Part shown: positions 1 to 58,213 of the stretch, piece by piece
How the letters are laid out: every line of letters starts with the position of its first letter
Numbering within the stretch: position 1 is the stretch's first letter
Assembly (NCBI GenBank): GCA_002189035.1
Contig: NEEC01000012.1
Location: forward strand, 1,922,001 to 1,986,000
Direction of reading: 5' to 3'
DNA: 64,000 nt
Source: Utricularia gibba
Lineage: Eukaryota > Plantae > Magnoliophyta
Translations under genes and position numbers: made by a program
The notes under the pieces: model-generated
The model's database searches: none
What the model was told of the DNA's origin: nothing
What the model saw: the letters and a program-made list of their open reading frames with translations, nothing else

Positions 1-632
1 AGTATAAACTGAACTAGTAAAAAGTTCATGAAAAAAATATGTGGATTTGATTTTAGGATAAGGTGAATTTCAGCGATGAAGCAACATGTGAATCTTCTAG
101 TGATATGAGGTTGTACGTAATGGTTTTGAGTAGATGATAATATGATGATAAGATTTATTGATTTTATGGTTAGTCATTGAAGTGAGTTATTTATCTTAGA
201 TTAGATATTATCTCTTAAAATTGTAAATGTATTATTGATTCTTTATCTTACTTGTGAACGTTGTGTCAATCTATATTGATTGAGATCAATGGTGTATTAA
301 AAAATTGATATTGGATTTTATGTAAGCCAAAGAAGTCTAGCTATCTGGGTGTATCATGATGAACAAATTATGTATTTCTTATTTTTTATATTCGTTAGCA
401 TTATATATATATAAAATAAATAGTTTAATCCAACATCCGGAACATAACATAAAGTTCCAAACTTTTTAACATTTGAAAAATTTGTTCCTAATAAATATGT
501 ATATTATTTATATTTATATATTTATTTACATTTTTTCTAATCAGAAATATTTTGGCATAGTATCATTGGGCCATACTCAATTACACTTGACAATGCCTAT
601 CTAATAAACAATTATATTATAATATAACCATC

Positions 633-1204
633 TGATACGACCCTCCAATCAACAAGTGATTGGCAAACCAGATCTTGGTTGAAAAGAAACAATCCGTCGA
701 GAAAAAAGAAGTTGGCCCTCAAGGATTAAAAGATCCTTGCAACCCAAACTATGAAATGGTACCACACTCACAGAATTAAGGAATAAATTGGGAGTGATAA
801 ACCACACACTAGACACCACAAGTAAGGCTTGATAAGTCTAAGTTCTACAAGAACTCAAGGAAGGAGAATTTGCTCTCAAAAGTGATTATAATCAAAGTTG
901 TCCAAAACAAGAGTAAGGCCCTTCTTATATAGCTGAAGGATTGGGCATTATTGGAGGCAAAGTAGTCATAATAATGTATTTGGTCGTAATGGGCATTCTC
1001 TAATCAAGTTGATCCACTTTCATAATGTTGAATTCCATCCCAAACACCTCATAGCTTGGGTGATTGGCCCATAAGCTCTTAAGCACTTCTTGATTCCTTA
1101 TTGCTCTTGATCTAGTGATTGGCCCAACTGAAATCAATGAAGAATTATTGATCTTGTGTCCTTTGTCTTCATTGGAATAATCAGTAGCATCCATGATCTC
1201 ATCA
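633..1204 (-). repeat. 3' LTR of the CRM element
   Basis: Direct repeat of 6537-7108; 14 substitutions and no indels by hand alignment; PPT lies immediately internal. Confidence 0.96.
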
Positions 1205-4200
1205 TCCCCCCCCCCTTCTTTTAGCAGATTCATCCTTGAATCGTCACTATCTACATCACAAGGAACCAAGTCAGCAATATTGAATGTGGAATGCACCGAA
1301 AACTCACCTGGAAGATCAATCTTATATGCATTATCATTGATTTTCTCAATGACTTGAAAGAGTCCATCTCCTCTAGGTAAAAGCTTTGAATGTCTATTGC
1401 TTGGAAATCTTTCCTTTCGAAAATGTACTCAAACCCAATCTCCTGGTTGTAGAGTAACTTTCTTCCTATGCTTATTTGCTTTAGCTGCATACTCCTTGTT
1501 TTTGGCTTCCAATTGATTTCGAACCTTCTCATGTAGTGTTCTGATGGCTTCTGCTCTCTTAGCACCATCAAAACTACAAAATTCATCAGATGGCAAGGGC
1601 AACAAATCTATAGGAGCACAAGGATTAAAACCATACACAATTTCAAAAGGAGAACAACGAGTAGAAGAGTGTATTGCTCTATTGTATGCAAACTCAACAT
1701 GAGGTAAGCAATCTTCCCATGTTCTAATGTTTTTTTGATGATGGCACGAAGTAGGGTAGCTAGGGTTTGGTTTGTTACCTCGTTTTGTCCATCAGTTTGA
1801 GGATGACAAGTGGTAGAGAAAAGAAGCTTTGTTCCCAACTTACTCCAAAGTGTACGCCAAAAGTGGCTAAGAAACTTCGTGTCACGATCACTTACAATGG
1901 TAAGTGGCATACCATGAAGCCTAACAATCTCCCTGAAGAATAAATCAGCAACATGCGAAGCATCATCAGTCTTGTGACAAGGAATGAAATGTGCCATCTT
2001 GGAGAACCGGTCCACGACTACAAATATTGAATCCTTTCCCTTTTGAGTCCTCGGTAATCCTAAAACAAAATCCATAGAAAGGTCAATCCAAGGATAAAGA
2101 GGAGTAGGAAGAGGAGTGTACAATCCTTGAGAAGTTGATTTTGATTTGGCTTTCTTGCATATCAAACATCTTCCACAGATTTTTTCTACATCTTTTCTCA
2201 TGTGTGGCCAATAGAAGTGTTGTTGAAGCATGTCCAACGTCTTGGTGACCCCAAAATGTCCCATTAGACCACCACCATGAGCTTCTTTCACTAAAAACTC
2301 ACGAATTGAACATTGAGGAATACATAATCTGTTCTTTTTGAAAAGAAAATCATCTTGCCTATGGAAGTTTTCAAGAGATTTATGTTCAAATGAAAGATAA
2401 ATATCTTTAAAATCATGATCAAGACTGTAAAATTCTTTTATTGTTGACAATCCAAGAATTTGAGCATCAAGAGTAGCTAAAAGTGTGTACCTTCGTGACA
2501 ATGCATCTGCAACAATGTTCTCCTTACCTTTCTTGTATTTGATAACATAAGGAAAGGTATCAATGAACTCCATCCATCTTGCATGTCTTCTATTGAGATT
2601 TTTTTGACTCTTGACATGCTTCAAACTTTCATGGTCTGTATGGATAACAAACTCTTTGTGTCAAAGATAGTCTTTCCAAGTTTCAAGTGCTCTTACCAAT
2701 GAGTACAATTCCTTATCATAAGTTGGGTAATTGAGTGTAGCTACACCCAACTTTTCACTGAAATAGGCAATAGGTCGACCTCCTTGTATGAGAACAGCAC
2801 CTATTCCAACTCCAGAAGCATCACATTCAATTTCAAACGTGTTAGAGAAATCAGGTAATGCAAGTAAAGGAGCTGAGCTAAGCTTATCCTTAAATGTCTT
2901 GAAAGCATGTTCTTGTGATTCTCCCCACCAAAATTGAACATTTTTCTTCACAACCTCGTTCAATGGTGCAGCAATTGTGCTGAAATCCTTGACAAAACGA
3001 CGGTAGAAGCTAGCCAATCCATGGAAACTGCGCACTTCTCCAACTGTGGTAGGAGTTGGCCATTCTCTAATTGCTTTCACCTTGTCTTCATCTACTAAAA
3101 TTCCTAAATCACTTACAATATAGCCAAGAAAAGAGATTTTGTTTGTGCAAAAGTCGCACTTTTTGATATTAGCATATTAACACTCTTTTTTCAAGACGAA
3201 CAACACCTCACGTAAATGACATGTATGTTCATCCAGTGTCTTACTATACACAAGAATATCATCAAAGTAAACAACAACAAATCTATCAAGAAAGGGACGC
3301 AATACATGATTCATTAACCTCATGAAAGTACAAGGTGCGTTAGTCAATCCAAAAGGCATAACCAACCATTCATATAAACCAAACTTAGTTTTGAAAGCAG
3401 CCTTCCATTCATCCCCCTTTCTCATCCTAATTTGATGATATCCACTACGCAAATCAATCTTAGAGAAAATGCATGATCCATGTAATTCATCTAACATATC
3501 ATCAAGTCTAGGTATAGGATGACTGTACTTAACCATTATTTGGTTGATGGCTCGACAATCAGTGCACATTCTCTAAGTTCCATCATGATTTGGCACCAAT
3601 AATACTGGAACTGAGCATGGACTCACACTTTCCCTCACCAACCCCTTAGCCATGAGTTCTTCTACTTGGCATTGGATTTCTTTGGTTTCTTCAGGGTTGG
3701 CCCTATAGGCAGCCCGGTTTGGGATTTGAGCACCAGGAACAAGGTCAATTTGATGTTCTATTCCTCGGTATGGAGGTAATCCAGGTAATTTTTCAGGAAA
3801 AACATCATTGAATTCCTGCAAAACAAGTTTAATACAAGTAGGAAGATCCTCTTGTAGGTTAGAGTTGTGTGACAAAGGCTCTTTAAACAAGAGCAAAAGA
3901 AAGGGATTTCTGGCATGTAACACTCTTTTAACATCACTCATTCTTGCAATAAGGCATTCCACTTCTTTTTTTCTCACAACTCCTTCATTCACGTCTTTCT
4001 TTTCACTCTCTTTTTTAGGTGTTCTTTTCCTTTCTCGTGATATCTCTTTTTTCTCCCCCATACTCTCATCCCTCAACTCACCAAAAGATTTGATAGCAGC
4101 AGCAATCTTAACTTGATCTTCGTGTGCGCCTTTTGGAGATAAAGGCACCAATGTGATTGGTTTTCCTTTTATGGAAAAGGAATACTTGTTTGTATATCCA

Positions 4201-5835
4201 TCATGAATCACCTTCCTATCATATTGCCAAGGCCTTCCCAATAGTATGTGTCCAGCATGCATGGGCACTACATCACAAAGAACCTCATCCGCATACTTTC
4301 CAATTTGGAAAGCAACAAGAACTTGCTTATTGATCTTTACTTCACTCCCTTCGTTCAACCATTGAAGCTTGTAGGGATTTGGATGTTTAAGAGTAGGAAG
4401 ATGGAGTTTATCCACCATGAGAATACTAGCTACGTTTGTGCAACTGCCTCCATCGATGATTAGGCTGCAAACTTTTCCTTTCACAAAACAACGTGTATGG
4501 AATAAGTTTTCACGTTGCTCCTCCATTGGCTTAGCATCCATGGCTAAAGTTCTCTTGTTACCAAACTTTCACCAATGACATGTTGTTGTTCCCCATCATC
4601 TATCTCTTGTACTTCACTTCCACCTTCACTCTCAACTTCAGATTCAACATCTCCAGAATCCCTTAGAATCATGGTCCTCTTGTTTGGGCATTCCGAAGCA
4701 ATATGACCATGGCCAAGACATTTGAAACACTTGATATTTCGTGTTGGTCCAGAAGACTTAAATACTCTTTCCTGTTTTTGAGTATCTTGAGTGCCCTCTT
4801 TCATCGGTCCAAACTTGGTTGATTTCCCAAATGAAGGATAATTGGGTTTCTTCTCCTTACTTCCAGCAACATTCCACGAGGTAGTAGGTTTTGGATGGTC
4901 TCTATGTTGTCCCTTAGACCTAAGTTGCTTCTCAATCTTTATTGCAACGTGCAACATGTCTTCAATCTCCACATAGTGTTGCAACTTGACCACTTGAGAG
5001 ATTTCCTTGTTTAAACCATAGAGGAATCTTGCCATTGTAGCTTCCCTATCCTCTGTTATATTGTCTCGAATCATTAACACCTCCATTTCTTGCCAATATT
5101 CTTCCACGGTTTTGCTCCATTGGGTGAGCTTCTGTGGTAGTGGCTGGGAATGAACCTTTTTCTCATGATCCTCTTCATTTCAAGCCAAGTTCGAATTGGT
5201 TCTTCATCATTTCGTCTTCTATTGAGTACTATTTTGTCCCACCAAGTTATGGCATAATCTGTGAACTCAACAACAGCAAGCTTAATCTTCTTGGCTTCAG
5301 AATAGTTATGGCAATCAAACACGTGCTCCACACGAGTTTCCCACTCCAAGTAGGCATTTGGATCGTTTTTTCCTTGAAAAAAAGGGATTTTCATCTTGAT
5401 GTTTTCAAATTCCTTGGGTTCACGTGTGTGTCTACCTCTTGGTCTTTCATCATATCTCACACCACGTTTTGGCCTCCAATTTCTTTGAGATCTTTGTTCT
5501 ATATCATCACCACCAGATGAATCATACTCATCAGAGCTGTTTTTATTGTTTCTCCTTTGTTCACCATGCCTTGCCTCTTCAGCCTCAGATTCCGAATCTT
5601 TTTCTAGTTGAGAATTCTTTCTGCTATGATGTGTTGGAACTCTTGTTCTTCCATGAGAAACGCTGTCCTCTTCTTGCTTTTTGATGTTTTTGAGAGATTC
5701 ATCATGTTCCTCTAGTTTGAGGTGGATTTGCTCCATGCATCTCTGCAGTCTCCTAAATTCACTTTGCATTGCATTAAGTACGAAACGAACATCCATAGCA
5801 CCTGATTCTTCTGCAGGGTTGTTAGAGCTTGACAT
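1000..5835 (-). pseudogene. gag-pol polyprotein of the CRM element, broken into fragments
   Basis: Gag (KMKIPFFQGKNDPNAYLEWE; zinc knuckle [14 protein letters not shown]), protease (LIIDGGSC), RT ([26 protein letters not shown]), RNase H ([14 protein letters not shown]), integrase (HxxGxxGH...C..C, SMDFV, SDRD, DGQNE), C-terminal HSTFNIADL...GPITRSRA. Interrupted by in-frame stops and frameshifts. Confidence 0.95.
1205..1222 (-). other. Polypurine tract (PPT)
   Basis: Minus strand AAAAGAAGGGGGGGGGGA directly precedes the TGATGAGATC start of the 3' LTR. Confidence 0.9.
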
Positions 5836-6520
5836 TCTACTATAAAAGGAAGGAAAGAAAACAATGAAAGGAGGATAGAAGTAAAAGAAGAAGGAGAGAA
5901 TTTCCAAACCTCAAATCCTCTTGAACCTTAAAATTCAATAAACCTTAAATGATCAATCTAAGTGTGGTTCAAAGGGATAAGGATGGCTAGGATAATGAGT
6001 GAGATAAAGCAAATGAACAATATAGGATTCGGTGATGGTAATAGTAATTATGATTAGGTAAGAGTAAAAATGGAAAGATAGAGTGTAACTTGTTGTGTCT
6101 AGCACAAAAGAGGTAGGTAGACAATTGAAAAGAATTAAAAGGTAATATAAGTGTGACAATAGACAAAGTTGTACAATATTGACTTTTCTTTTGTTTGGTA
6201 AGCAGAAGATTGAATGGATTCAAATGACTAACTCCTTTTTTTTTACTTTTCTAGTGTGTGAAAAGTTGAAAATTCAATGAATTCGGCAGCTAACCTTCTT
6301 TCTCCCTTCAACACGTTTTTTTTTTCTTTTTGCAGCAATCCAAAAGAAAAGGATGGAAGAAACAAAGATAAGAAACCCCCCTTGGTTTTTCTTTTCAGAA
6401 GAAGAGATGAGCAAAAGACAAGATAACCAAATCAAGATAGATCTGGATTAGTTTCTTTTTTTTTTTTTTTCTTAGAATGAAACCACAACAAGATAGATAG
6501 TATATGAAGAAGAGAAAGAT

Positions 6521-6534
6521 TGGCTCTGATACCA
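6521..6534 (-). other. Primer-binding site, initiator tRNA-Met type
   Basis: TGGTATCAGAGCCA on the minus strand, 2 nt inside the 5' LTR. Confidence 0.93.
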
Positions 6535-6536
6535 CC

Positions 6537-7108
6537 TGATACGAGCCTCCAATCAACAAGTGATTGGCAAACCAGATCTTGGTTGAAAAGAAACAATCCG
6601 TCGAGAAAAAAGAAGTTGGCTCTCAAGGATTAAAAGATCCTTGCAACCCAAACTATGAAATGGTACCACACTCACAGAATTAAGGAAGAAATTGGGAGTG
6701 ATAAACCACACACTAGACACCACAAGCAAGACTTGATAAGTCTAAGTTCTACAAGAACTCAAGGAAGGAGAATTTGCTCTCAAAAGTGATTATAATCAAA
6801 GTTGTTCAAAACAAGAGTAAGGCCCTTCTTATATAGCTGAAAGATTGGGCCTTATTGGAGGCAAAGTAGTCATAATAATGTATTTGGTCATAATGGGCAT
6901 TCTCTAATCAAGTTGATCCACTTTGATAATGTTGAATTCCATCCCAAACACCTCATAGCTTGGGTGATTGACTCATAAGCTCTTAAGCACTTCTTGATTC
7001 CTTATTGCTCTTGATCTAGTGATTGACCCAACTGAAATCAATGGAGAATTATTGATCTTGTGTCCTTTGTCTTCATTGGAATAATCAGTAGCATCCATGA
7101 TCTCATCA
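6537..7108 (-). repeat. 5' LTR of the CRM element
   Basis: Copy of 633-1204; followed on the minus strand by the PBS. Confidence 0.96.
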
Positions 7109-12455: not shown

Positions 12456-13275
12456 TGTTAGGAGGAGACAACCCGATGAGATAGAAGAAGAAACAACTCC
12501 TGCACCCCAAGCCGAAAGGAGAAGGTTGAAATACCATTTATACCTGATAAAAAAATCGTTTTTTAATTCAACATGTTTAATTCATTTTTATTTTACAGTG
12601 TAATACTTTAATTTGTGTAAAATCCAATTAAAAAGTTTACAAACAAATTCATTTTATGACATTTCGTCCAAAAACTCATTGTAATTAACTGGCACAAATA
12701 TTACTTTCTTTTTTATTAAATAATTATGTATTCTTTTGAAATAAATCATAAAAATTTTTAAATTATATTATAAGTGAATATTAAAAGCATTAAAAATTGA
12801 GAAAATTCACTTGAAATATAATTTTTTTTAAAGTAATACATAATTACTTAACTAAAAAAAGAAAGTAAACCAAATTATATTTGTGACAGTTAATTTTGAC
12901 AAGTTTTTTTATCGGAATACCATAAAATGAGTTCACTAATAAACTTTTTAATTGAATTTTACACAATTTAAAGTGTTCAATTGAAAAATGAATGTACCTA
13001 ATGACTTAAAAAGCAATTTTTTCTTAAATATTATAATATTTATTTTTACCTTTTGTAAGGATTGCTATTTTAAAATAGATGCAAATCTAGTAGGAGGAGC
13101 GGAGCACCTTGAATCTTGTGTTTTGCTGAGTTCTTCTCCCGGTTCAGGATAGGCCGAAGGAAGAAACCTTCTTTGCTGGAAAATGCCATCTCAATGCCTT
13201 TTCTGATATTCCACAACAAGCAACAAACTGGGCTAAATCAACCTCGAACCAGGTCTCAAACAAGCGACATACACA
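12456..13275. mobile_element. Solo LTR (820 bp) inserted in the PPR pseudogene exon
   Basis: Starts TGTTAG, ends ACACA; perfect 5-bp TSD GGGAG at 12451-12455 and 13276-13280; removing it restores the VWGA(L/F)LGAC codons. Confidence 0.85.
12525..13055. mobile_element. AT-rich foldback / Mutator-like MITE nested in the solo LTR; another arm at about 23700-23830
   Basis: Long imperfect inverted repeats, e.g. tgtgtaaaatccaattaaaaagttta (~12614) versus taaactttttaattgaattttacaca (~12940); boundaries approximate; no TSD found. Confidence 0.55.
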
Positions 13276-14627: not shown

Positions 14628-15170
14628 CTAAGCCTCCTCCACCCCCACGGCGGCTCCGGTGTTCATCTTTTTTTCCAGTGGTACTTCGACACCCTCCTGC
14701 TTCTCTTCATCACCAGCATCGACAGGCAATAGAGCGTTCTCCTCCTCCTTGTCGAGCTGAAAGGCCTCTACCGGGAAAGAGCGCGACAACCCAGCCGCCC
14801 GAAAGTGTATTTTCCCGGTCGGGGGATCATCGACGTCGATCCCGGTGAGAGTTATCCAAAGGAACATCTCCTTGGTCTTCACCCCGGTGAGTTTCTTGAT
14901 CTTCCCCGGCTCGACGTAGGCCGTGACCTCCCTAGCATACTGCGCTACCCGGTCGACTTTTTCGAAACGGTGCTGGGATTTCTCCCTCTGGATGAGCCAC
15001 ACGAAGCCGGTTTCCTTGATGTAGCCGGTCTCCTCGATGTCCTTGAGAGGGAGGAGACCCTCGGGAAGGCCGACTTCGGAGAGAAGGAATCGAGACCTCT
15101 CCCTGCAGATGGCGTCGCCGTGGTAGAGCTCCGAGGCGGCGGCCCTCATGTCGTCGGTGATCTTGGACAT
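14628..15170 (-). CDS. DUF538 family protein, SVB-like, 180 aa, single exon
   Basis: Intact ORF with DUF538 signature (LLSEVGLPEGLLPLKDIEETG...GFVW...GKIKKLTGVKTKE...SRSFPVEAF); resembles Arabidopsis SVB as recalled. Confidence 0.9.
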   Translation of the reverse strand: MSKITDDMRAAASELYHGDAICRERSRFLLSEVGLPEGLLPLKDIEETGYIKETGFVWLIQREKSQHRFEKVDRVAQYAREVTAYVEPGKIKKLTGVKTKEMFLWITLTGIDVDDPPTGKIHFRAAGLSRSFPVEAFQLDKEEENALLPVDAGDEEKQEGVEVPLEKKMNTGAAVGVEEA

Positions 15171-17297: not shown

Positions 17298-17567
17298 CTG
17301 AAGATATATTTGAACATAAGCTTAAACATGTTGGAGGGAGCTTGCTCAAGACTAAAACTCACATTCAAATCAACTTCTAAAACCGATGACGTCATTCGTA
17401 CAAGAACAAAGGAACATGATGCAAACGAAAGAAGAGGGCATTGAAGCAAATGTGAGAATTCACTCATAATCAGAAAAATGGAACAGGTGCACAACAAAGC
17501 AAGCAACATATTAAATGAGAATAATGAAGGCCCGTGAAGAAGTATCTTGTGTAGTAATCATCGAAGA

Positions 17568-20500
17568 TCACTTGCTATCACTATAATCAAGTCCCAAGTT
17601 CTTTTTCATATCTTTAGAGAGACTGAACTGCAGGGTGTTATGCCATGGGAATAGCGTACGTGTTACAGGGAGTTTCCGTCGGAGGTCCTACAATAGTCGA
17701 ACAAGTGATAACAATCAAAAGACTAAGCAAGCACTTTGATGCTATGCTTTGAGGGGGGTGAGGATACTTGAAACATTGAAAACGAGAATATGTTGCAGAA
17801 AAACTAGAATAAAAATTTGAAGAAATTAGAGAAATATATGTTGATGAAAATTGATTTGTACATAAACTGAATCTATATATTGAACATGCATAAATCAATG
17901 GAAATACCTTGAAGGTTGTGTCTGGTAATTTGGAGTAGGAAGCCTAAAAATAAAACCATGCTGAGTAATTTAGAAAATTAACACTAACTTCAATATAATG
18001 CATAGGAGGATTACGACACCTGAAGGTAATTTAGATATTCTGTCTCGTGGTGACGAATTATATTAGTCAATGAAACTGCAGAATCATTGGGTGACTGAAA
18101 AATAACTAATCATTAACATTTTATTGATGAAAAAGTATACTAAGAAAGTAAAAATGCACTCAAATGCACCAAGATCTATCTTATATTAATATTTATCAAT
18201 ATCCAAATCCTGCAGAGGATAAATTCATACAGATTCCAATTACCTGAAGTATGGTTGAATCTTTGCACATTTTCTTTGTATCTAACTGCACATTACCCTC
18301 CTCAAAATAGTGAGCCTCTACCTGATTCAAACATATGGCATGTCATATTAAATCAAAGAGTATATATGATAATCATTAAACAATATAAACATAATTTTAA
18401 CCAAATGATTAAAGACACTACCAACAAATAAGGTATTTACCATCAGCTTGCCAGTTAATTCTATAATTTGTAAGTCATCATTGAACTTAATAACCCACGT
18501 AGACAACCAGCTACCATTGCTGAAAAAAATAAGATGGGATGCTGAAAATAGTTATACATTGAAACTACAAGTTATCTCCAAAAGAAAAAAGAACACAAAA
18601 TAAACATCCAAGAAATCATATTAGGTCGCTAACTCTAATCAAATACTTTATCTTGAAAAAAAAATTCAAAAAATCACAAATATAAATTATTTCAACACAT
18701 GCAGCATACCAAAAATTCTGAGGACTATTTTTAATGGAAGAAATCACGACAACAAGCTCAAACTCTGAGCCTCCTTCATCCCCTTCTTTTTCACTGGTAC
18801 AATACACACAACTTACACCCTTGGGATATGCTTCAACAACATACTTTATGATTTCAGCATCTAAGGCCCCCCTGCCAAATAGACCAATAATCATAGAAGA
18901 AAATCAAAATAAATTTGGGATATCCAAAGAAAACGAGAAAAAAACAATTCATAAATTTATTTGATAGAAATTTTATTAAACAAATGTTATCTTTCAATAT
19001 GATCAGAAAATGAAGCAAATACATTTCAAATACTGAGGCAAAAAAGAAAAGTTATCCCAAGTACATCCAGATGAAATTTCAAAAAAGTTTATGATTTGAT
19101 TTCACTATTTCAATAATTTATAATCAACAATTCCAGAATCTCGAGAAGTCTTAAAAAAAATCATTCATGAGAGAAAAAAATAGCAAACACAAAAATATCA
19201 AAAACCATATTTTCATCACAAAAAAATAGTAAAAATACCGATATTCCTCAACATATGAAGAAGAAAGCTCTTCATCAGTCGCTACTCTTGTAGATTCACA
19301 TACCTGAATAAGTAAGCACCATGTTTTAATAAAAATACAATATAACTTGGTATCTAATACTACCAAGCAAGCGGCACCTCAACAAGATGATGCAACAAAC
19401 CCAAGTTTTATCAAAATTCATCAATCTCTTATTAAATGTGTCAAGAAAAGAAAAAGCAAGTGAAAGTTTTAAAAAATTCAAAAACATCTGTTTGCTTATT
19501 CCCAAGCAACGAGCATCTAACTTTAAGAAATGGGTTATAGTTGAATCTCAAAAATAATTACAAATTAACAACACGTATGCTATAAAATTTACTGACTTGG
19601 ACAAATGGCTCACACTAGAAATCAGACAACCTTCTATGAATTTCTCAAAGATCACGGCAACCAGAAAAAAAATGTCCATATTTTTAGTGAAAATCTAAGC
19701 TTAAAATCCAAAAAATGGATGAAAATGAATTTATTCATGAACTATGCACATGCTACCATGAATAGGAAAAAACCAAGTTCACCTGTTTAACATGGTTAAC
19801 TATTGCAACTTGGGTAGTCCTTGGATCAAGATATTCGTTCTCAACAATCTCATTGTATGATGTAATCAAAACCTATAACGAAATATAAACTTTAATGATA
19901 TAAAATCCAAGAGAATTGATGCAACAATGCAACATTAGTCACCAAACTTAAAATATAATGACAATTACATAATTAACAAAAATTTTGTAGGTAACAAAGT
20001 AGTAGCTTAAAAATATTTGTGCAAACCAACATAATCACAATAAAAAAAACATAGAATAAATTTCTCATCAATTACAAGTTGTCGATTTCTCTAGGGATCT
20101 GATCTTCTTATATGTTAGCTACAAAACTAATAACTGTAAATTAAAAAGATACCATGCATATGGCAGATAAGATATATTCTCTCTGTAAACAATTTTAAAA
20201 AACTGTCAAACAGCTATAACAAAGATAGTACAGAAAGCAATAGAAATAAGAAGAACAACCTTTCACGCTTTCAATAAACATGTAGTTTCAAATTACCTCA
20301 CCGGTTCTATCAGGAAACTCAAGACAGATCATATGAGCCTTATTGTATATCGGAAATGCCTCTGCCGCAGCAGCTTCAAACAGCTTCTCATCCCTCAAAA
20401 GCTCCCTTACATCTGCATTTTCAAGAAAATGACTTATAAATCCATTATTGAGGCTTCAATTGTGAGCACAAAAGCAAATTGCAAACCTTTAGCGACATAA

Positions 20501-20592
20501 GAAATTTCACCAGCAGGAGAATTTAACAAAAACCATTTTGCGAATTCGATCTTCTGCTCATTAGTGACTTCCAACGCAGATTCTTCCTCCAT
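17568..20592 (-). CDS. CPA: F-actin capping protein alpha subunit, copy 1; open 308-aa frame
   Basis: 10 GT-AG exons: 20592-20487, 20412-20297, 19872-19783, 19303-19239, 18871-18710, 18519-18441, 18321-18244, 18094-18020, 17943-17908, 17687-17568 (927 nt). Motifs AKWFLLNSPAGEI, EYLDPRT, HYFEEGNVQL, DLRRKLPVTRTLFPW. Confidence 0.93.
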
Positions 20593-20761
20593 GATCTAAC
20601 AAACAAATTCAAGGATTTGAAAAAAAAAAGTGCACACTTTTAAATCCACGAATTATTTGGATTAAATTCTTCTTTTCAAAATTAATATATTATTAATTAT
20701 TAATTATGTTACATGATAAAATATGTTTTTTTTTAATTCTCATAAAAAATGTCACAAATAC

Positions 20762-22469
20762 CGGCTGATTGTATACATATTGATAAGACCGCTGGGAGTG
20801 CTGTGCGTGCTCCTGGTTAGCAACAGGTTGCCTATTCTGAACTTGCCTCTGCGGATTAGCATAGGTGCCAGCAGGCATACCTTGGCCCATTGAATTCCCA
20901 ATTGCACTAGAAGCCATATTTGCAAGGCTTTGCATGTTCTGAATGTTAGAATTTGGCCCAGGAATATTGGGCATGGTGCCACTCATAGCGGGAAGACCAG
21001 ATGACAAACCAGAAGAATTTGGAACGCCATTCAAAGCAATATCATTATGTAAATTCTGGGATGAAATCTGCAGCCGCGCCTGAGACTGACTGGAAACCAT
21101 CAGAAGTTGAAGTTGTTGGACCTGATTTTGTATTTGGGACTGCATGCTTTGAGAAGCTGCGTTAAGCATGCAGAGAGATTGAACATATGGTGACACAATA
21201 ACTCATATAAAACAGTGCATCATCATAAACACAGTAGCGTACAAGTACTTATTTCAAGATAAAAATAACCAGAGACGAAATCCTGGCAGCATTAACAGTA
21301 TAAAACAATTCATATTGTGCAGATAATAATCATGTAAGCAATACCAAGACATATTAGCAGACTACTGCTCGCTCCAAACAATCAAAAATAATAAAAAAAA
21401 AGATGATATTCGTCTGTGTTATGACTCTAATCAGATAACATGATAGAAACAACTTTTAGACAGGGCTCCGTATATTTCCTGTAAGATGAATGATTTGTAA
21501 TCCCTTTTCGGATACCAATACCACTTTACTTTATGATTTGGCAAGAAAACTAGAAGCTTTCCCAGAACTAGATTTTCAAATGGTCTTTAGACAGCATTCT
21601 AGCGATGCATGGAATCAGCTATGGAAAAAGTCTTTAAATCTGGCAAGTTATCAACCGCTCCAGTCAGGAAATCAATCCCCCCATAACTTGAAGCAGACAC
21701 TAATATCAAATCCAACTTGGACAATAACACCAGAAGACCCCTTAATCACATTCATTTGCAACAATCAAGAAGAGTTGAAAATTTTTCGGAGTATGCCATT
21801 GGATCCATAGGTATGCGATACACAAGTTGCCGGAATGGGTAGGTATATCGGCTCATCAATGATGAAAAGTTGAGGCTCATTATAAAGGGGATGGTGTGCC
21901 GGTGAGAATATACCGAGCCCAAATGCCACAAGAGCAAGGAGAGTCACCTTCTTAATGGCAACAACAAAAAAAAAAGAACTCTTTTCATATACTTCAGCGA
22001 TATTCTGTACCTGGGTCCTGCGAATTACTTCCACCACCAGGCTGCATAGAATCCGGATTCTGAGACTTTGTCTCCATAGTAAACATCTTCATAGATATTT
22101 TTCTTAGATAATCTGACTGTATGTCCAATTAAAAGACAACAGGAACGGTCATTATACATGTAACGCTCAGCGTGTACGCAGGAGGAAACAGGGGAAATTT
22201 CATTTAAACCTGGCTTGTTGCTGCGATGTATATCTTCTCCTCAAACCTGGCAGCGATTTTTTTGAGTTCTTGCAATCCCTCTGGTCCAGAATAAGGAAGA
22301 TGCCTCTTCAGCGTCTCCATTCTGCAATCGAAAGCATCATAATTGATACTTATCTCAAAGTCTTAAAAGACACTCTCCACCTAAACTTAAAACCTAATTC
22401 TTACATTTCATTCACAATTCTCTGCCTAGAATCTTGTTGCAGCTGACCCCTCCAATCACCGCCTTCCAT
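20762..22469 (-). CDS. MED15: 5' portion of a Mediator subunit 15 gene (KIX domain plus Q/S/N-rich linker); 3' part deleted; possibly the N-terminal exons of a MED15-CPA fusion
   Basis: Open, in-phase exons 22469-22405, 22321-22210, 22116-22011, 21156-20762 encode GDWRGQLQQDSRQRIVNEIMETLKRHLPYSGPEGLQELKKIAARFEEKIY...DYLRKISMKM. Sequence switches to the CPA upstream region at about 20760. The start codon is inferred. Confidence 0.85.
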
Positions 22470-24054
22470 TCCCGCGTTTGCCACCGGCTCAGCACCCACG
22501 ACCTGACCAGGAATTTGAACATGGGCATGCGTTCCTCAAATCGTTAAAAAAAAAAAAAAAACAACGCACAAAACCTTACAAAAAGAAGATGATGCACTGA
22601 AACTTTTCCGCTTCCAAAGTCAACTTTACGACGAAGAAAGAAAAAACAAGGTAACTACAATCAAGTTGGAAACGAAACAAAGGGATCAGGAATTTTGACC
22701 TAACGGATTGATTGGATGCTTGTTTAGACAGCAGCCGTCACGAAAATATAGCGATTAAATTGTTAATTATTCTCTCTAATATTAATTGTATTTAATTTTT
22801 CATTTTTTTAAATTCAGTGCAAAAGTATTATTTCATATATAATATCAAATGATATATACAATTAAATATTTATTTTCATCCTTAAAAATGATCCACACCA
22901 GACACACAACAATTTTAAAAGTAAAAATATATATTAAATATATAATAGTATTGAATATAATGAATTATATTCAAATATTTTTTAAATTAAAAAATTAAAT
23001 CTAATTTTTTTCCTATAATCAAGTATGTCGAATTAAAAATGATATGGTCAAATGAGATTATATTAATGTTTGATATTATACAAAAACTTAGAATATAATC
23101 TACCCAACTTATTTCATAATTTTTACTTAATTTATAAATATAATTTATTAAATGAGTAGAATCTAAATAAGTAGTTGTTGTGTGCATAACATTTGAAAAA
23201 ATTGATGACTTATTTTGATAAGTAGGCAAAGGTAACTTATAAAATAAGTTGGATTTTGAGTAGAAATATAAAGAAATTTAAAATAAGTAAAAATTAAATG
23301 AAAGTTTGAATAGAAATTATAAATAATTAAAAATTGGAATAATCTATAATAATTAATTTTAAAGAAAATATTTTTTTAAATCATGATATTTGATTTATGT
23401 TTATTTTACAGTTAAATACTTTATATTATGTAAAATCTTAACAAAAAATTTACAAATAAATTCATTCTATAGCATTACAACCCAAAACTCATAAGAACTA
23501 ACTATTACGATTATCATTCGCACTCACTTCTTTTTTTTGATTTAATAATTATGTATTTTTTTCAAAAAAATTTCTATAATTTTTAATAATTGTGCTGAAC
23601 CATAATTATTGAATCAAATATAATTTAAAAATTTTTATGATTTATTTGAAAAAAACACATAATTATTGAATAAAAAAAAAGAAAGAAGCTCAAATGATAA
23701 TTGTGATTATTAATTTTGACAAATTTTTTATCAGAATACCCATAAAATGAGTTTATTGATAAAATTATTTTATATAATCTAAAGTGTTCAACTATAAAAT
23801 AAAAAAATTCAAACATTGTAATTTAAAAAATAATTTTTCTTTATTTTTAATATATATTTTAAATTACAAGACAAAAAATAAATCGTACATATTATATTCT
23901 TAGATTAATAATATTAAAAAAATTGATATTTCTCTATTTGATTAATTAATGCATTAAAAATGATATGATGTAATTTTATTTTTTTAAAAATAAGTAGTAA
24001 TAAATAAAATGGACTCCCCCGTTCTTCCATCAGGTTCACTAGTTTGGTCGTCCA

Positions 24055-26880: not shown

Positions 26881-27160
26881 CTGTAGAAACACAAGTTTAC
26901 ATACAAATGAAGGATTAGAGTAAGTGGCCAAAATATCTAAGAAAAAGACACCCAAACTCTATTTAAGTATATGTAAAAATTTGGTACTAATGTGTGTATG
27001 TGTGTGAGAGAAAGGTCATATTGACCACTTTGGTAGAATTATCAATAAATGAGCTAAATCACCCTCATTCATACAGATCAAAATCAATTGGATCTTTCAG
27101 TGTTAATCAATCGAGTACATGGTTTTTGGAGTTTGGGCTTCATTCTCTTCTTCTTCTTCA

Positions 27161-29127
27161 ATGGCAAAGATACCTGTAGGAAGAAGACAGGTTCCTTTTT
27201 TGTTCAACTCCCTAAACAAGTCAACTTCACACAGTATGTCAATTACACCGAAGTCGCCCTCGGTTTTAGCCACCAATCTCATTATGTCATACTTTGAGGC
27301 GGGCCTCGTCAGAGACGCACGAGCGTTGTTCGACGAAATGCCTCAAAGAGATGTTATCGCTTGGTCAGCCATGATAAGTGGTTACAATTCGTGTAACTTA
27401 CCGGAATCGGCGTGGATGACATTCTTGCACATGATGCGGGATGCTGCTCGAACGCAGCCCAATGAGTTCACTTTCTCCAGTGTGCTGAAGTCATGTAAGA
27501 GCCTGAATGCTCTTTGTCTTGGGGCGTCTGTTCACGGCCTAACAACTAAGAGTGGTGTGCTTGATAGTAATTATGTGAGTAACTCGCTTATGGATGTTTA
27601 CGGCTCTTGCTGCTATTCCATTGATAGGGCTCTTGCTGTTTTTGATGAAATTGTGTATAAGAATACGGTTTCCTGGACAACCTTGATTGCCAGTTTTACG
27701 CACCTTGGTGATTGCCATGGTGGCCTTCGAATTTTCCAACGAATGTTGAAGGTATGTTAGTACTTTCCATATCTACTGGATCTTCAGTCCCCACCAAGAA
27801 AACCATACTGTTGAACCAGCCATCTTTTGGGATTACTCCTTGTGGCTTTTCCTTTTCAATGGTATTTTGTCAAACCTGATGGTAAATGAGTGATCCTCTG
27901 TTATGCATTTTCCATCAACAGGAAAACGCTGAGATAAATACGTTTAACATTTCAATTGCGATACGAGCTTCTGCATCAACTGGTATAGAAGTCTATGGGC
28001 AGCAGATTCATGCTATAGCACTCAAGCATGGCCTTGTATCCAGCATACCCGTGATGAATTCTATTCTAGACATGTATGCAAGGTGCACTAGTTTGATGGA
28101 AGCAGATCGCTGTTTCGATCAGATGGTGGAACGGGATATAGTCTCTTGTAACACCATGATTGCCAGATATGAGAAACTAGATCCATATAAAGCTTTGTGC
28201 CTATTCTCTAGATTAGAATCCCAAGGCCTCACTCCTAACTGTTTCACATTTACCACAGTTGTAGCTGCAGCAGCTAACATGGCTGCCTTGGGAGTTGGAC
28301 AGCAGGTTCATGGAGGAGCTCTGAGACGAGGTCTTGATCTAGATGTTTGCTTAGGCAATGCTTTGGTCGACATGTATGCGAAATGTGGCAGCATTGTGAA
28401 CTCATGCAGAGTTTTCAACGAAATGCATTCAAAGAATGTTGTCTCTTGGACATCTATTATCAATGGGTATGGGAGCCATGGCCATGGCGTGGAGGCCATA
28501 CAAATGTTTGAGCAGATGATTCAATCTGGAGTCAGGCCTGATCGTATTGTCCTCGTTGCAGTCCTCAATGCCTGTAGTCATGCGGGGCTTGTAGATGAGG
28601 GCCTGCAATATTTCAAATCCATGATCGCTGCTTATGACATTCAACTAGATCAAGAGATTTATGGTTGTCTTGTAGACTTGTTGGGTCGTGCTGGGCGAGT
28701 CAACGAAGCATATCAGGTGATCGAAGCCATGCCATTTATGCCTGATGAATCGGTATGGGGAGCGTTTCTCGGAGCCTGTAAAGCGCACAAGCGTGCTGAG
28801 TTGGGGAAGCTAGCTGCAACCAGAGTGTTGGATTTAAAACCAAGCATTTCAGGAACTTACATGGCAGTGTCAAACATATATGCAGATGATGGGAAGTGGG
28901 AAGACTCTGCAAGGGTAAGAAAACTATTGAGAGGAATTGGAAACAAGAAAGAACCTGGAAAGAGTTGGATAGAGGTAAGCAGCCAAATCATCAGCTTCAT
29001 AGCTGCAGACAGATTGGGTCCTCACATTGAATCTGTTCATGAAACTGTAAACATACTTCGCCTGCATATGGAACCACCCCGACTCAGCCAGGAAGACATA
29101 CAGTTATTGGCATATTATATAAACTAG
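27161..29127 (+). CDS. PGN: PLS-class (E-type) PPR protein, PGN/PCMP-E64 (At1g56570)-like, about 598 aa
   Basis: Exons 27161-27751 and 27922-29127 join in phase 0; tandem P-L-S motifs and an E domain (WGAFLGACKAH...EPGKSWIE); strong resemblance to At1g56570 as recalled. An alternative ATG lies at 27119. Confidence 0.85.
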
Positions 29128-29441
29128 AGGGAACTTGAGGATGAATAGGATGGTCGTCAAACTCCATCATGCACAAAGCTACAATCAGAAGAGTTGGATT
29201 TAATTCAGAAAGGGATCCAATAACTTCAACCAGAAAAGATAGATTGATTCAGAGTAGGCAACCTCGGAAATTCAGGTCAGTAAATTGCAACTTGATACAT
29301 TTGCAATGCTTAATTAACTAAAGCCACAAATAACCACATCCTTGTTCTTATTCTCTAAGAGTACAGGTGAAGTAATGAAACTTTGAACACATGCTCCTTA
29401 TTCATAATGGAGAGTTTCAAGGCTGATTTGGGGTTCAAGGG

Positions 29442-29650
29442 CTAAGCCTCCTTCATCCCCATGGCAGCTACGATGTTCAAGTTTTCCAACAGTACTTCGA
29501 CACCCCCTGGTTCTCTTGATCACCAGCATCGACAGGCAATATAGCTTCTCCTCCCCATTGTCGAGCTGAAAGAGGCGTCCTTTGTCGGGAAATAGCCCGC
29601 AATCCAGCCGCCCAGAAATGGATTTTCCGAGTCAGCGGATCATCGATATC
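29442..29650 (-). pseudogene. 3' remnant of a DUF538/SVB-like paralog
   Basis: Aligns with 14628 to about 14838 with indels; the shared 3' flank extends from about 29090; the 5' part is replaced by AT-rich sequence. Confidence 0.85.
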
Positions 29651-35658: not shown

Positions 35659-36704
35659 ATGGTGTGCGCTTCCGATCCCCTGGTTCAAAAAATCACCGAG
35701 CTCTACCGCAAAATCTCCGCCATCGACGACCTTCGCCCATCGGAAGCCGTGAACTGCCTCTTCTCTCAACTCGTGCTCCTCTGCATTCCGCCGCACCCGA
35801 TCGACGTCACTAATCTCTGCTCCTCGGTCCAAGAGATCCGCCAGAACCTGATCCGTCTCTGCGGCCAAGCGGAGTCTCTATTGGAATTCCACTTCTCCGC
35901 GATTCTCTCCCAATTTCCGCTCCCACTCGAGCAGCTCAACATCTTTCCTTACTACTCGAATTATCTCAATCTCTCTCGCCTTGAGTGCTCGCTGCTCCGG
36001 CGCCACTCCGCTGCACCACGCCGCCTCGCGTTCGTCGGATCTGGCCCGCTTCCGTTGACCTCCATCGTCCTCGCGAAGCACCACCTGAAATCCACCGTGT
36101 TCCATAACTTCGACATCGACGCCGATGCTAATTCCGCCGCCGCGCGTCTGATCTCCGCGGACTCCGATCTCTCGCGGCGGATGTCGTTCATCACTCAGGA
36201 TATCATGGATGTGCCCGCGGCGGTGCTGAGGGAATACGACGTCGTCTTCCTGGTAAAATATCAACGGAGCTTAGTCAGTAGTCACATACAAATAAGCCAA
36301 CCAAACCATCGGTCGGCATCAAGATCATAATTGTCATTTGTTTTTTTCCCCCCTTCCAGGCCGCGCTCGTGGGGATGGACATCGAGGAGAAGATGAACGT
36401 GATCGACCATCTCGCCGCCAACATGGCGCCGGGGGCCGTCTTGATGCTACGGAGCGCGCACGGCGCTAGGGCTTTTTTATACCCGGTGGTGGAGCCGCGA
36501 CACCTCAAGGGGTTCGAGGTGTTGTCGGTGTTCCATCCCACCGACGAGGTGATCAACTCCGTCGTGGTGGCGCGGAGGTGCGCCAAACCGGGGCACCTGG
36601 TCAGCGGAGGGCAAGCTTTGCTGTGCAGCAAGTGCGCCGGCGTGGAGTCCTTCAACGCCCTTAGCCTCGTGGGAGAGGTCGGCGCCGAGGATCACATGTG
36701 CTGA
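35659..36704 (+). CDS. NAS: Nicotianamine synthase, 312 aa, two exons
   Basis: Exons 35659-36252 and 36360-36704 (107-bp GT-AG intron, phase 0). Motifs FPYYSNYLNL, AFVGSGPLPLTS, YDVVFL|AALVG, LRSAHGARAFLYP, FHPTDEVINSV, LLCSKC. Confidence 0.95.
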
Positions 36705-53464: not shown

Positions 53465-54520
53465 ATTGGAGATAGTTAGCCCCACCTATGGCTGTGAATG
53501 CTAATAGGGGTAGGGTGTGGAAATAGTTTGGCTTTAAGACGGGTGGGCACACCAAATCGGGTCAACCCGACTCGACTCCGGTTTGATAATCAAACCAATA
53601 TCCAGTGGATGGAGTACCAAAGTTATGCTGATTCCTTAGGGCTTCTTTAGATTTCATTTCATGTGCAAAGAAAACTCAAAATCTTACTGTTCTGTTCATT
53701 GGCTTAGACCTGTTGGTGGTCTCCCTTCTGGGGGAGGCTTCAGGGAGCTTGCTCAAGACTAAAACTCACATTCAAAAACATATTTTTGCTTATTCACAAG
53801 CAAGGGGCATTCTGGCTCAGACAACTGGGTTATAGTTGAATCCTGACCACAATTACAACTTAACAACAGGTATCCTATAAAATTTACTGGTCACATGAAT
53901 GGCTCGCACTGGAAATCAGAGAGTGCCTCATCCATCAATTCAGCCTTCTCTTGAATTTCTCAAAGACCATGGCGTCTAGGAAAAAAATGTCCATATTTTT
54001 AGCGAAAATGTAAGCTAGAACCCCAAAAAATGGATGGAAACGAACTTATTCACGAACTATGCACAGGCTACCATCAACTGGAAAAGACCAAGCTCACCTG
54101 TTTCACATGGTTAACTATTGCAACCTGGGTAGTCCTGGGATCAAGATATTCGTTCTCAACAATCTCATTATATGACGTAACCAGAACCTACAAAGAAATA
54201 TAAACTAACTGATGTGAATCTCAGAAGAATTGATGGAACAATGCGACACAGGTCACCAAGCTTGAAACAAATTGGAAACTACATAAATATCGTAAAAATT
54301 TGCAGATGCCAAGCTAGTAGCTTAAAAATATTTGTGCAAGCCAATGAAATCACAGTCAAAAAATCACTGCATAGATTTCTCATCAATTAGCAGTTCGCCT
54401 TTTCTTTAGGGATCTGAGCTTCTCACATGTTAGCTACAAAACTGATAACAGTAAATTAAAGGGATACCATGCATCTCGCAGATAAGATCGGGCCTTTCCA
54501 TAAAAAATTAAAAAAAAAAA
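53465..54520 (-). pseudogene. Internally deleted third CPA copy: 3' flank fused to intron 3, exon 3 (54098-54187) and part of intron 2
   Basis: 53465-53772 matches about 57745-58032; 53772-54500 matches CPA intron 3, exon 3 and intron 2 (about 60148-60725 and 19480-20175). Exon 3 is open with both splice sites intact. Confidence 0.88.
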
Positions 54521-56338: not shown

Positions 56339-56773
56339 TGTTGTGGTTGAAAATCAATATTCGAACAAAGACCGATTTTTGGGTTATGAGTACTGTCGGG
56401 GGCATCATATCCAGTTAAAATTCTAGTGTTTTGGGGTGATGCGATATGGTCGACAGAAATGAAAAGAGACAAGGGATTTTTATGTGGAAATTGTCGAGAA
56501 ATGAAAAAACCTCAGAGCTGTCGGAACTTATCGAAAGATGGTTTCACTAAATAGAGAAGTAGAAGAAATACAAGTTAAAGAACCTGGAGTCCAACCTTTT
56601 CTTTTTCAGGATTTCTTATATTTATAGGAGAGTTTGATCTGATCGAATTTTGAATTCTGTAGGTGTCAGCTATTTTCTGTGGTTGCTATACGTACTGTGG
56701 TCTTACTTTTCGAATAATCGTTACTTGCTTTGTCATTGTCATAATTCGATCACTTTTCAAACTATCCACAACA
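56339..56773 (-). mobile_element. Probable solo LTR (435 bp), copia-like ends
   Basis: TGTTGTGG...CCACAACA perfect 8-bp terminal inverted repeat; internal CTATAAATA on the minus strand; no matching TSD (AATGA versus ATCGC). Confidence 0.65.
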
Positions 56774-58213
56774 ATCGCCATTGACAAACTCTGACAGTTA
56801 TTGGCCTGTCAGTTTGCACTAGTCCGTCAAAACACCTTTAGATTACTTTTCATAGACCGATTAAACCAATCTAATTTAGACCCCATCAAATGCCCAAATA
56901 ATATTGACATTATAAATTCCCATTATTTTTATTTTTTTATGTTGGTTCCTATTGTAAATATTCATTTTTTCATAAACCTAATTTTTTGTTTTTTTTTTTG
57001 CAAAATAGGTTGATGCACTCTTATTACCCATATTCTTATATGATACCAGTTGCTTTGAATATCCAAACTTCATAATCTTACGTTTTTTACTTTTGAGAAA
57101 AATATTAATTTAAAATTAAAATAATCATTCTATTTAAACATATTATTTCTCGTTTATAATCAATATAGAGTATCATCATTAGATCTATTGCCTTACATTA
57201 TTCTAATCTTAAACAATTAGCATTTTCGTTAAATACGACTTCATTCCACTATTGGTACGAGCCCTATTTGTCGTTCATCACTTGTCATCGCCGATGCTAA
57301 TGTGGCAATCGGCACCACGGTGTGCAATGCTCCCATCGGCAGCCACAGACAGCCAGCTGCTGTGTCGACTTGTGGCCATGCAGTTTGGATTTGATCCTGC
57401 TTGGTCAAAAGGCAAAAAATTGAATCTATTTTGTTTCAATTTATTTTAATTTATTTAAGTTTAATATTATCATACCTTTCATAATTTAATATTAAATCGA
57501 AAATCATAATTAATTTTTTTCATTATGTGCTTTGAAAAATACTTATTCTAGGGTCTTAGAAAATATTTGTGTAAATTTTATTGCGTTGTAATGTTTAAAT
57601 TATAAATTCGTTTGATGATAATTTGAGTGAAAATATGAATTTTTTACTTAATGGAAAATAATCCCTAAATAATATTAGCACTATAGATCCCCAATCTATA
57701 ATTTGAATGTTTTTTCTCCTTTATTTATTAATTTTGAATTTAGAAGTGTGAGGTAGCTAGCCCCACCTATGGCTATAGATGCGAATAAGGGTAGAAAGTG
57801 GAAATAGTCTGGTTTATAGACGATCGGGCACACCAAATCAGGTCAACCCGACCCGACTCCGGTTTGATAACCCAACCAAGCTATCGATGCTGATTCATTA
57901 GGCTCCCTTTAGATTTCATTTCATGTGCAGAGAAAACTCAAAATCTTGTGTTCTGTTCGTCAACTTAGACCTGTTGGTGGTCTCCCTTTTGGGGGAGGCT
58001 CAGGGAGCTTGCTCAAGACTAAAACTCACATTCGAATTGATATAAGAACAAAGGAAAACGATGCAAACAAAAGAAGAGATCTTTGAAGCAAATGTGAGAG
58101 CTCACCCCTAAATCAGAAAAATGGAAGAGATACACAACAGAGCAAACAGCAGATGAAATGAAAACGATGAAAGCTTGTGGTAGAAAAGTACCTTGTGTAG
58201 TAGTCATCAGAGA

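Follow-up and report, generated by a model that had tools for sequence, protein, structure and literature searches.

A 64-kb stretch of Utricularia gibba DNA (64,000 nucleotides (nt) of contig NEEC01000012.1, hereafter the window) contains on its minus strand, from 22469 down to 17568, a single chimeric gene built from parts of two parental genes. Its 5' part consists of the first exons of MED15, which carry the KIX domain, and its 3' part is a complete gene for the alpha subunit of actin capping protein (CPA), here called CPA copy 1. A second CPA gene (copy 2) and a third, partial CPA fragment lie elsewhere in the window (Table 1). Such a fusion had been proposed in a first-pass annotation made from the sequence alone; here the proposal is set beside RNA and DNA sequencing runs, the corresponding genes of related plants, and protein databases.

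The rebuilt exons place all 14 exons, the 1608-nt stop-free coding sequence (CDS) and the product of 535 amino acids (aa) where the first-pass annotation had put them. The MED15 part, described there as open and in phase up to 20762, indeed comprises four exons (678 nt, 226 open codons) that encode the KIX domain and a Q/S/N-rich linker. CPA copy 1 contributes ten exons from 20592 to 17568 (927 nt, 308 aa) with an intact frame, and the two are joined through a single ATC codon (20595-20593), so that the product is made up of 226 MED15 residues, one Ile and 308 residues of capping protein alpha, with the sole stop at its end and the junction peptide YVYNQP-I-MEEESALEV. In Pfam comparisons KIX_2 and F-actin_cap_A (PF01267) fall on separate exons, indicating two parental genes. 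The CPA exon peptides tested match PF01267 at profile positions 20-54, 58-87, 107-151 and 239-263, and the last CPA exon aligns with CapZ alpha-1 residues 258-284, where the motif LRRxLPVTRT..W (258-271) is kept as LRRKLPVTRT..W. The MED15 part is nearest to core Lamiales, being 66% identical to Sesamum MED15a over 225 aa (Salvia about 64.5%, Castilleja 63%). It ends at codon 226 and therefore lacks the Med15 C-terminal region, by which MED15 is anchored in the Mediator tail; MED15 orthologues have PF21539 near residue 1000. The 3' untranslated region (UTR) of the chimeric mRNA reaches about 17300-17345, and because the stop lies in the last exon no signal for nonsense-mediated decay is expected.

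Table 1. Parts of the chimeric gene and the other CPA sequences of the window.
Feature	Position	Strand	Remarks
5' leader of chimeric mRNA	22470-22694	-	RNA contigs reach about 22694
MED15 exon 1	22405-22469	-	KIX start; first ATG is Met30 of canonical MED15a; joint 22321/22405 in RNA
MED15 exon 2	22210-22321	-	KIX core; Pfam KIX_2 E=9e-14; RNA joints
MED15 exon 3	22011-22116	-	KIX end; Pfam KIX_2 E=1e-5; joint 21156/22011 in RNA
MED15 exon 4	20762-21156	-	First 131 codons of long Q/S/N-rich exon; ends at rearrangement breakpoint
Novel 166-nt intron	20596-20761	-	Former CPA promoter and 5'UTR; donor GT 20761-20760, acceptor AG 20597-20596
ATC linker codon and CPA copy 1	17568-20595	-	10 exons, 308 aa and stop; rebuilt exons, RNA, Pfam
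Third, partial CPA fragment	53742-54517	-	Exon 3 and flanking introns
CPA copy 2, conventional paralogue	58214-61193	-	Coding 58214-61129; spliced and expressed; RNA

Nine RNA runs, all of one organism, contain the stretch, and contigs from four runs, X1-X3 of one study and X5 of a second, were mapped to 17300-22900; the data are Logan contigs (k=31) from two studies and two accessions. The predicted splice from 20762 to 20595, which skips 166 nt between GT and AG, was found exactly in 4 of 4 runs, and all 13 introns were seen as GT..AG joints on the minus strand. A single contig, about 409 nt long, links MED15 exon 4 to CPA exon 3 by way of CPA exons 1 and 2. The depth of the junction contig (37.7, 33.2, 46.2 and 87.7 in X1, X2, X3 and X5) is close to that of both flanks, namely MED15 exon 4 (34, 29, 52-59 and 102-114) and the body of CPA (41.6, 32.3, 34.6 and 62.2); the MED15 exons, whose silence had been named beforehand as evidence against the fusion, are transcribed at the depth of the CPA exons. 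Contigs that match the joint have no mismatch on either side, and their ATC stems from the 5'UTR of copy 1, not of copy 2. In X5 the joint seems to be shifted by 2 nt; the junction is in fact unchanged, and a C-to-A substitution at 20763 turns CCG into CAG (P226Q), with the overall segment lengths preserved (134+111 vs 136+109). X5 differs at four further coding sites, and these single-nucleotide polymorphisms (SNPs) together with the identical junction indicate that a second accession carries the fusion.

CPA copy 1 is expressed predominantly as the fused mRNA, the sole form of its transcript detected in the contigs. A junction as deep as its flanks in all four runs is hard to reconcile with conjoined read-through of two independent genes, in which the fusion would be a minor by-product, even though the intron still contains about 165 bp from upstream of CPA, including a TATA-like motif. 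The bins 20479-20665 and 20666-20852 have the depth expected from exons only in every run (for X1, 109/187 x 37.7 = 22.0 and 91/187 x 37.7 = 18.4), and within 20596-20761 neither assembled RNA nor contig ends were found in the four runs, contigs being poor at proving absence. A private CPA start within 20600-20760, named beforehand as an alternative to the fusion, thus has zero RNA depth in its interval. Left unspliced, the MED15 frame would stop 20 codons beyond the breakpoint, and RNA running on to that stop was not seen; moreover, the position in copy 1 that corresponds to the mapped 5' end of copy 2 has become intronic, and copy 1 is missing about 14 nt around this position. Read-through as the source of the fused mRNA therefore appears very improbable.

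The junction was also looked for in DNA that is independent of the assembly. Among the 31-mers of 20540-20860, a fraction of 0.43-0.68 is present in DNA runs from studies of 2013 and 2019, and 0.25 in RNA runs, where about 0.33 would be expected from exonic words alone. Because junction words occur in the independent DNA runs, the genomic junction is real, with the intron present in DNA and absent from RNA, and the misassembly that had been raised as a possible objection is ruled out. More broadly, the chance that the junction is an assembly artefact, or that the RNA joint comes from elsewhere, seems to us negligible: the assembly does have at least one homopolymer indel error (in exon 2 of copy 2) and does disagree with the RNA in the leader, but on either side of the joint the RNA contigs are free of mismatches and carry the ATC of copy 1, and the DNA runs of 2013 and 2019 contain both intron and junction words.

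Bin arithmetic shows that leader RNA lacks 22505-22576 (72 nt) in 4 of 4 runs, and contigs of X2, X3 and X5, from both studies, directly show TA in its place. The segment contains both out-of-frame ATGs (22528 and 22522) as well as part of a relic of the MED15 N-terminus, and the leader actually observed is about 160 nt long with no upstream ATG. The caveat that an out-of-frame upstream ATG at about 22528 opens an ORF overlapping the inferred KIX start does not apply to this RNA, which lacks that ATG. A canonical intron was considered for the gap and rejected, as the RNA has TA and no GT..AG pair fits; the gap may be a deletion allele, a near-identical second copy or an assembly difference. 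As for the relic, the ancestral MED15a first ATG and 29 N-terminal codons are degenerate here and remain recognizable at 22535-22470, with an in-frame TGA; they were detected by tblastn, which placed Castilleja MED15a residues 8-53 on 22535-22398.

Comparison with CPA copy 2 and with related plants shows how the junction is constructed. The two CPA copies are similar from their 3' flank up to 20757 in copy 1 and 61309 in copy 2, and the homology between 19734-20757 and 60269-61309 halts at the MED15 edge, in agreement with the switch to CPA upstream sequence described by the first-pass annotation. The splice signals are also as described there: the donor CG/GTATTT is identical to that of CPA exon 4, and the acceptor gttAG/ATCATG of copy 1 differs by two substitutions from copy 2, which has gtCGG. 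In the MED15a loci of Olea (L001) and Castilleja (L002), exons 1-3 measure 152, 112 and 121 nt and the long exon 4 at least 515 nt, and the structure of MED15 exons 1-4 in the fusion matches both. Exon 4 of the fusion ends at the equivalent of ...QQYLY(S/N)QQ, and in both Olea and Castilleja exon 4 runs past this breakpoint, intron-free, for at least 70 more codons. Since the orthologous exon is uninterrupted, the donor GT is not MED15's own and the breakpoint lies inside exon 4; the donor stands where it had been placed, and was born at the breakpoint, not retained from MED15. It falls in a gap of 3-5 nt that separates the MED15-like sequence from the sequence similar to the CPA upstream region.

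We read the locus as a genuine germline gene. Where an old local duplication of CPA ends, a rearrangement placed the 5' part of a MED15a-type gene 165 bp upstream of the copy 1 ATG. The captured part comprises the promoter, the leader, the three KIX exons and 131 codons from the start of exon 4. The GT of the breakpoint is used as donor and the AG that precedes the CPA ATG by 3 nt as acceptor, which together bound a new 166-nt intron, and the spliced mRNA reads as one 535-codon frame encoding KIX, a disordered Q/S/N-rich linker, Ile and full-length CPA. The captured MED15-type promoter presumably drives transcription, and translation would begin at the KIX ATG. We put the probability that this is a real, transcribed, in-frame chimeric gene, and the main product of CPA copy 1, at about 0.85; whether the 535-aa protein is made and functional we judge to be close to an even bet.

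Neither a full-length nor a 3' MED15 was found in the 64-kb window by blastn or tblastn. A simple tandem duplication with its left breakpoint in MED15 is unsupported, there being no MED15 3' part left of the block of genes that includes CPA copy 1 (block A, described below). Upstream of the MED15 fragment lies a purH fragment (24.3-24.9 kb), and no match to this arrangement was found within the short flanks compared upstream of MED15 in Olea and Castilleja.

CPA copy 2 matches copy 1 exon for exon. As assembled it has a 1-bp deletion in a G-run of exon 2 (60925-60930) that breaks the frame and that the first-pass annotation had not mentioned, and the missing base, at 60929, is present in RNA (in an X3 contig, the only contig over exon 2). 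RNA thus restores the frame, pointing to an assembly error or a polymorphic homopolymer indel in an ordinary CPA gene with transcription of its own, and on this ground a reading of copy 2 as a pseudogene, with the fusion as the only CPA here, was rejected. Its RNA depth in contigs on 56600-62500 is 16.5, 11.3, 15.4 and 46.2, about 1/3 to 3/4 of that of copy 1; the fusion contig is 1.3-3 times as deep as copy 2. Transcripts of copy 2 extend upstream to 61193 or further, which gives this copy a 5'UTR of its own of at least 64 nt before the ATG.

Selection was estimated pairwise between copy 1 and frame-corrected copy 2. The two differ at 98 of 927 nt and 39 of 308 aa, with Ka 0.064, Ks 0.335 and Ka/Ks 0.19 (bootstrap 95% CI 0.12-0.29). 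A ratio of at least 0.5, the expectation if copy 1 had been neutral since the duplication, was reached in 0 of 5000 replicates. The introns of the two copies are 76.6% identical, with 24 indel events over an alignment of 1941 nt, and no indel occurs in the 927 nt of CDS, where about 5.7 would be expected if constraint had been lifted from copy 1 alone (P=0.003). Purifying selection has thus acted on the CPA moiety since the CPA duplication, a constraint that could largely predate the fusion. For the MED15 moiety a three-taxon estimate gave Ka 0.056 and Ks about 1.4 on the KIX branch, and Ka 0.25 and Ks 0.72 for the linker, which resembles normal MED15; both branches include time before the duplication, and the KIX value is therefore no proof of constraint after the fusion. 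Base composition has also shifted: strong-to-weak differences in copy 1 outnumber weak-to-strong ones by 60 to 19, copy 2 has C/G where copy 1 has T/A at 52 of the 98 coding differences, and copy 1 has 18 CpG and a gene GC content of 0.31 vs 28 and 0.37 in copy 2.

Several observations weigh against the chimeric gene as we read it. An X1-X3 contig joins the end of exon 3 (22011) to 80 nt that read ...QDP/DPSSQMGNSG and that are absent from the 64-kb window (30-nt search), and in X5 the depth of exons 1-3 is 3-4 times that of the junction; together these suggest a related MED15 transcript that shares exons 1-3, possibly through a young MED15 duplication. The parental MED15 of this species, against which the fusion might be dated relative to the CPA duplication, was not found, so that the constraint on CPA could largely be older than the fusion. 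The AT drift and CpG loss of copy 1 could reflect past methylation-type C-to-T decay; alternatively, they suggest a changed mutational regime. Continuity over exons 1-14 comes from overlapping k=31 contigs and no single long read covers it, and contigs, which show absence poorly, may hide a minor private CPA start site. Finally, given the mismatch with the assembly in the leader, the RNA may stem from another allele or a near-identical copy.

Some of the same observations would fit a real mRNA from a young fusion, in which CPA copy 1 would have been an ordinary gene through most of its past, a recent MED15 fragment replaced the CPA promoter and the 535-aa product is neutral or decaying. Identical k-mers from exons 1-3 seem to be common to the fusion and the parental MED15, which suggests recent MED15 duplication; the pairwise constraint on CPA is not divisible by time; copy 1 is AT-drifted and CpG-poor; and normal CPA is supplied by copy 2. 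Such a young fusion must nevertheless account for an identical junction in a second accession despite several SNP differences, for an acceptor made by two substitutions and exactly in frame, for the position of the fusion as the dominant and deeper CPA transcript, and for two halves of which neither has a stop or a frameshift. We regard it as unlikely, if still worth keeping in view.

Returning to the chimeric gene as proposed, its protein would most likely act as a CPA subunit with a flexible N-terminal KIX extension. In the CapZ structure (e.g. PDB 1IZN) the CPA N-terminus is part of the stalk and apart from the C-terminal region that binds actin, and pairing with the beta subunit (CPB) and capping should accordingly be possible. 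With the Med15 C-terminal domain missing, the protein should not be a Mediator subunit. It is a good deal more doubtful that KIX-linker-CPA is made, pairs with CP beta and has taken on a new role, and that selection keeps the fusion for this role beyond a mere promoter swap. Candidate roles could include the tethering of activators to actin filament ends or the recruitment of capping protein to activator/Mediator-type condensates or to the nucleus; the KIX domain could also be a decoy regulated by actin.

Protein searches for the same fusion were run from the MED15 side. With exon 4 as query against 1.84 billion representatives, phmmer gave 55 matches (the best at 59% identity), and F-actin_cap_A was present in 0 of the 10 that were scanned. 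Exon 4 alone gave no match in a word-index search of proteins of 72-229 aa. With a Fraxinus KIX+linker query (P0002; candidates of 432-1375 aa), PF01267 was found in none of the best 120 of 461. The literature search returned no report of KIX with capping protein, nor of Utricularia with MED15 or CPA genes. The KIX plus CP alpha architecture is not among the annotated proteins searched, and its mode of origin, duplication followed by fusion, is already known.

The closest parallels in origin are duplication-fusion genes such as Sdic, the Drosophila AnnX/Cdic chimera (reviewed in PMC3395120). There, as here, two unrelated genes were duplicated at the DNA level and then fused, one parent provided the regulatory and 5' parts and the other most of the coding sequence, new signals for exons and introns arose from stretches that had been non-coding or had served another use, and at least one parental gene remains intact nearby. 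The Sdic coding region, however, derives from Cdic alone, whereas here KIX and full CPA from both parents share one frame; in addition, the present case, in a plant, has gained a whole new intron from a former promoter and 5'UTR. The ubiquitin-CP alpha protein of the chlorarachniophyte alga Bigelowiella natans (PMC6332867) similarly has an N-terminal domain fused to CP alpha, but its partner is ubiquitin, which is probably cleaved off, it has another origin and it contains no KIX. MED15 is the 5' partner in the MED15-TFE3 fusions of human renal carcinoma as well (PMC12538908, PMC6881588); these are somatic cancer translocations with a transcription factor as partner and, unlike the present fusion, are not heritable.

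The locus thus offers a well-resolved natural case of multi-domain gene assembly, in which a breakpoint in a coding exon became a donor and two point changes an acceptor. A former promoter and 5'UTR were turned into an intron, and a constrained cytoskeletal gene gained a transcription-factor-binding domain together with a new promoter. If the protein is made, it would join Mediator-type activator recognition with the capping of actin barbed ends, two functions not known to be linked.

The third CPA fragment is a mosaic, parts of it being nearer to copy 2 (93%) and parts nearer to copy 1 (80-88%), and it retains about 150 nt of intron 3 that are gone from copy 2. Block A consists of PPR fragments (12.3-13.4 kb), an intact DUF538 open reading frame (ORF) and CPA copy 1; block B consists of PPR, DUF538-like, nicotianamine synthase (NAS), PHD and exonuclease sequences, the partial CPA at 53.7-54.5 kb and CPA copy 2. 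The first-pass annotation had described the neighbouring duplicates as decayed, which does not extend to all of them: the DUF538 ORF at 14628-15170 is intact (180 aa; Pfam E=2e-31) and has a partial match at 29301-29646. Looked up by its exact sequence, this ORF gave no record, and neither did look-ups of MED15 from Sesamum and Salvia. The apparent frameshifts of the PPR sequence that is split over 27119-29127, and of the NAS ORF, which is short (35659-36330), may likewise be indel errors, not decay. A repeat of about 450 bp, 72% identical between its copies, interrupts the PPR fragment of block A (12549-12992) and recurs upstream of the MED15 fragment (23362-23803); it is probably a transposable-element remnant.

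Towards the start of the window a long terminal repeat (LTR) retrotransposon of Ty3/gypsy type occupies 627-6830, with minus-strand ORFs for gag and integrase and with terminal segments of 300 nt that are 98% identical and 5904 nt apart. It is followed by an epimerase-like gene at about 9 kb. The NAS ORF of the window is closest to that of Genlisea aurea, at 71%.

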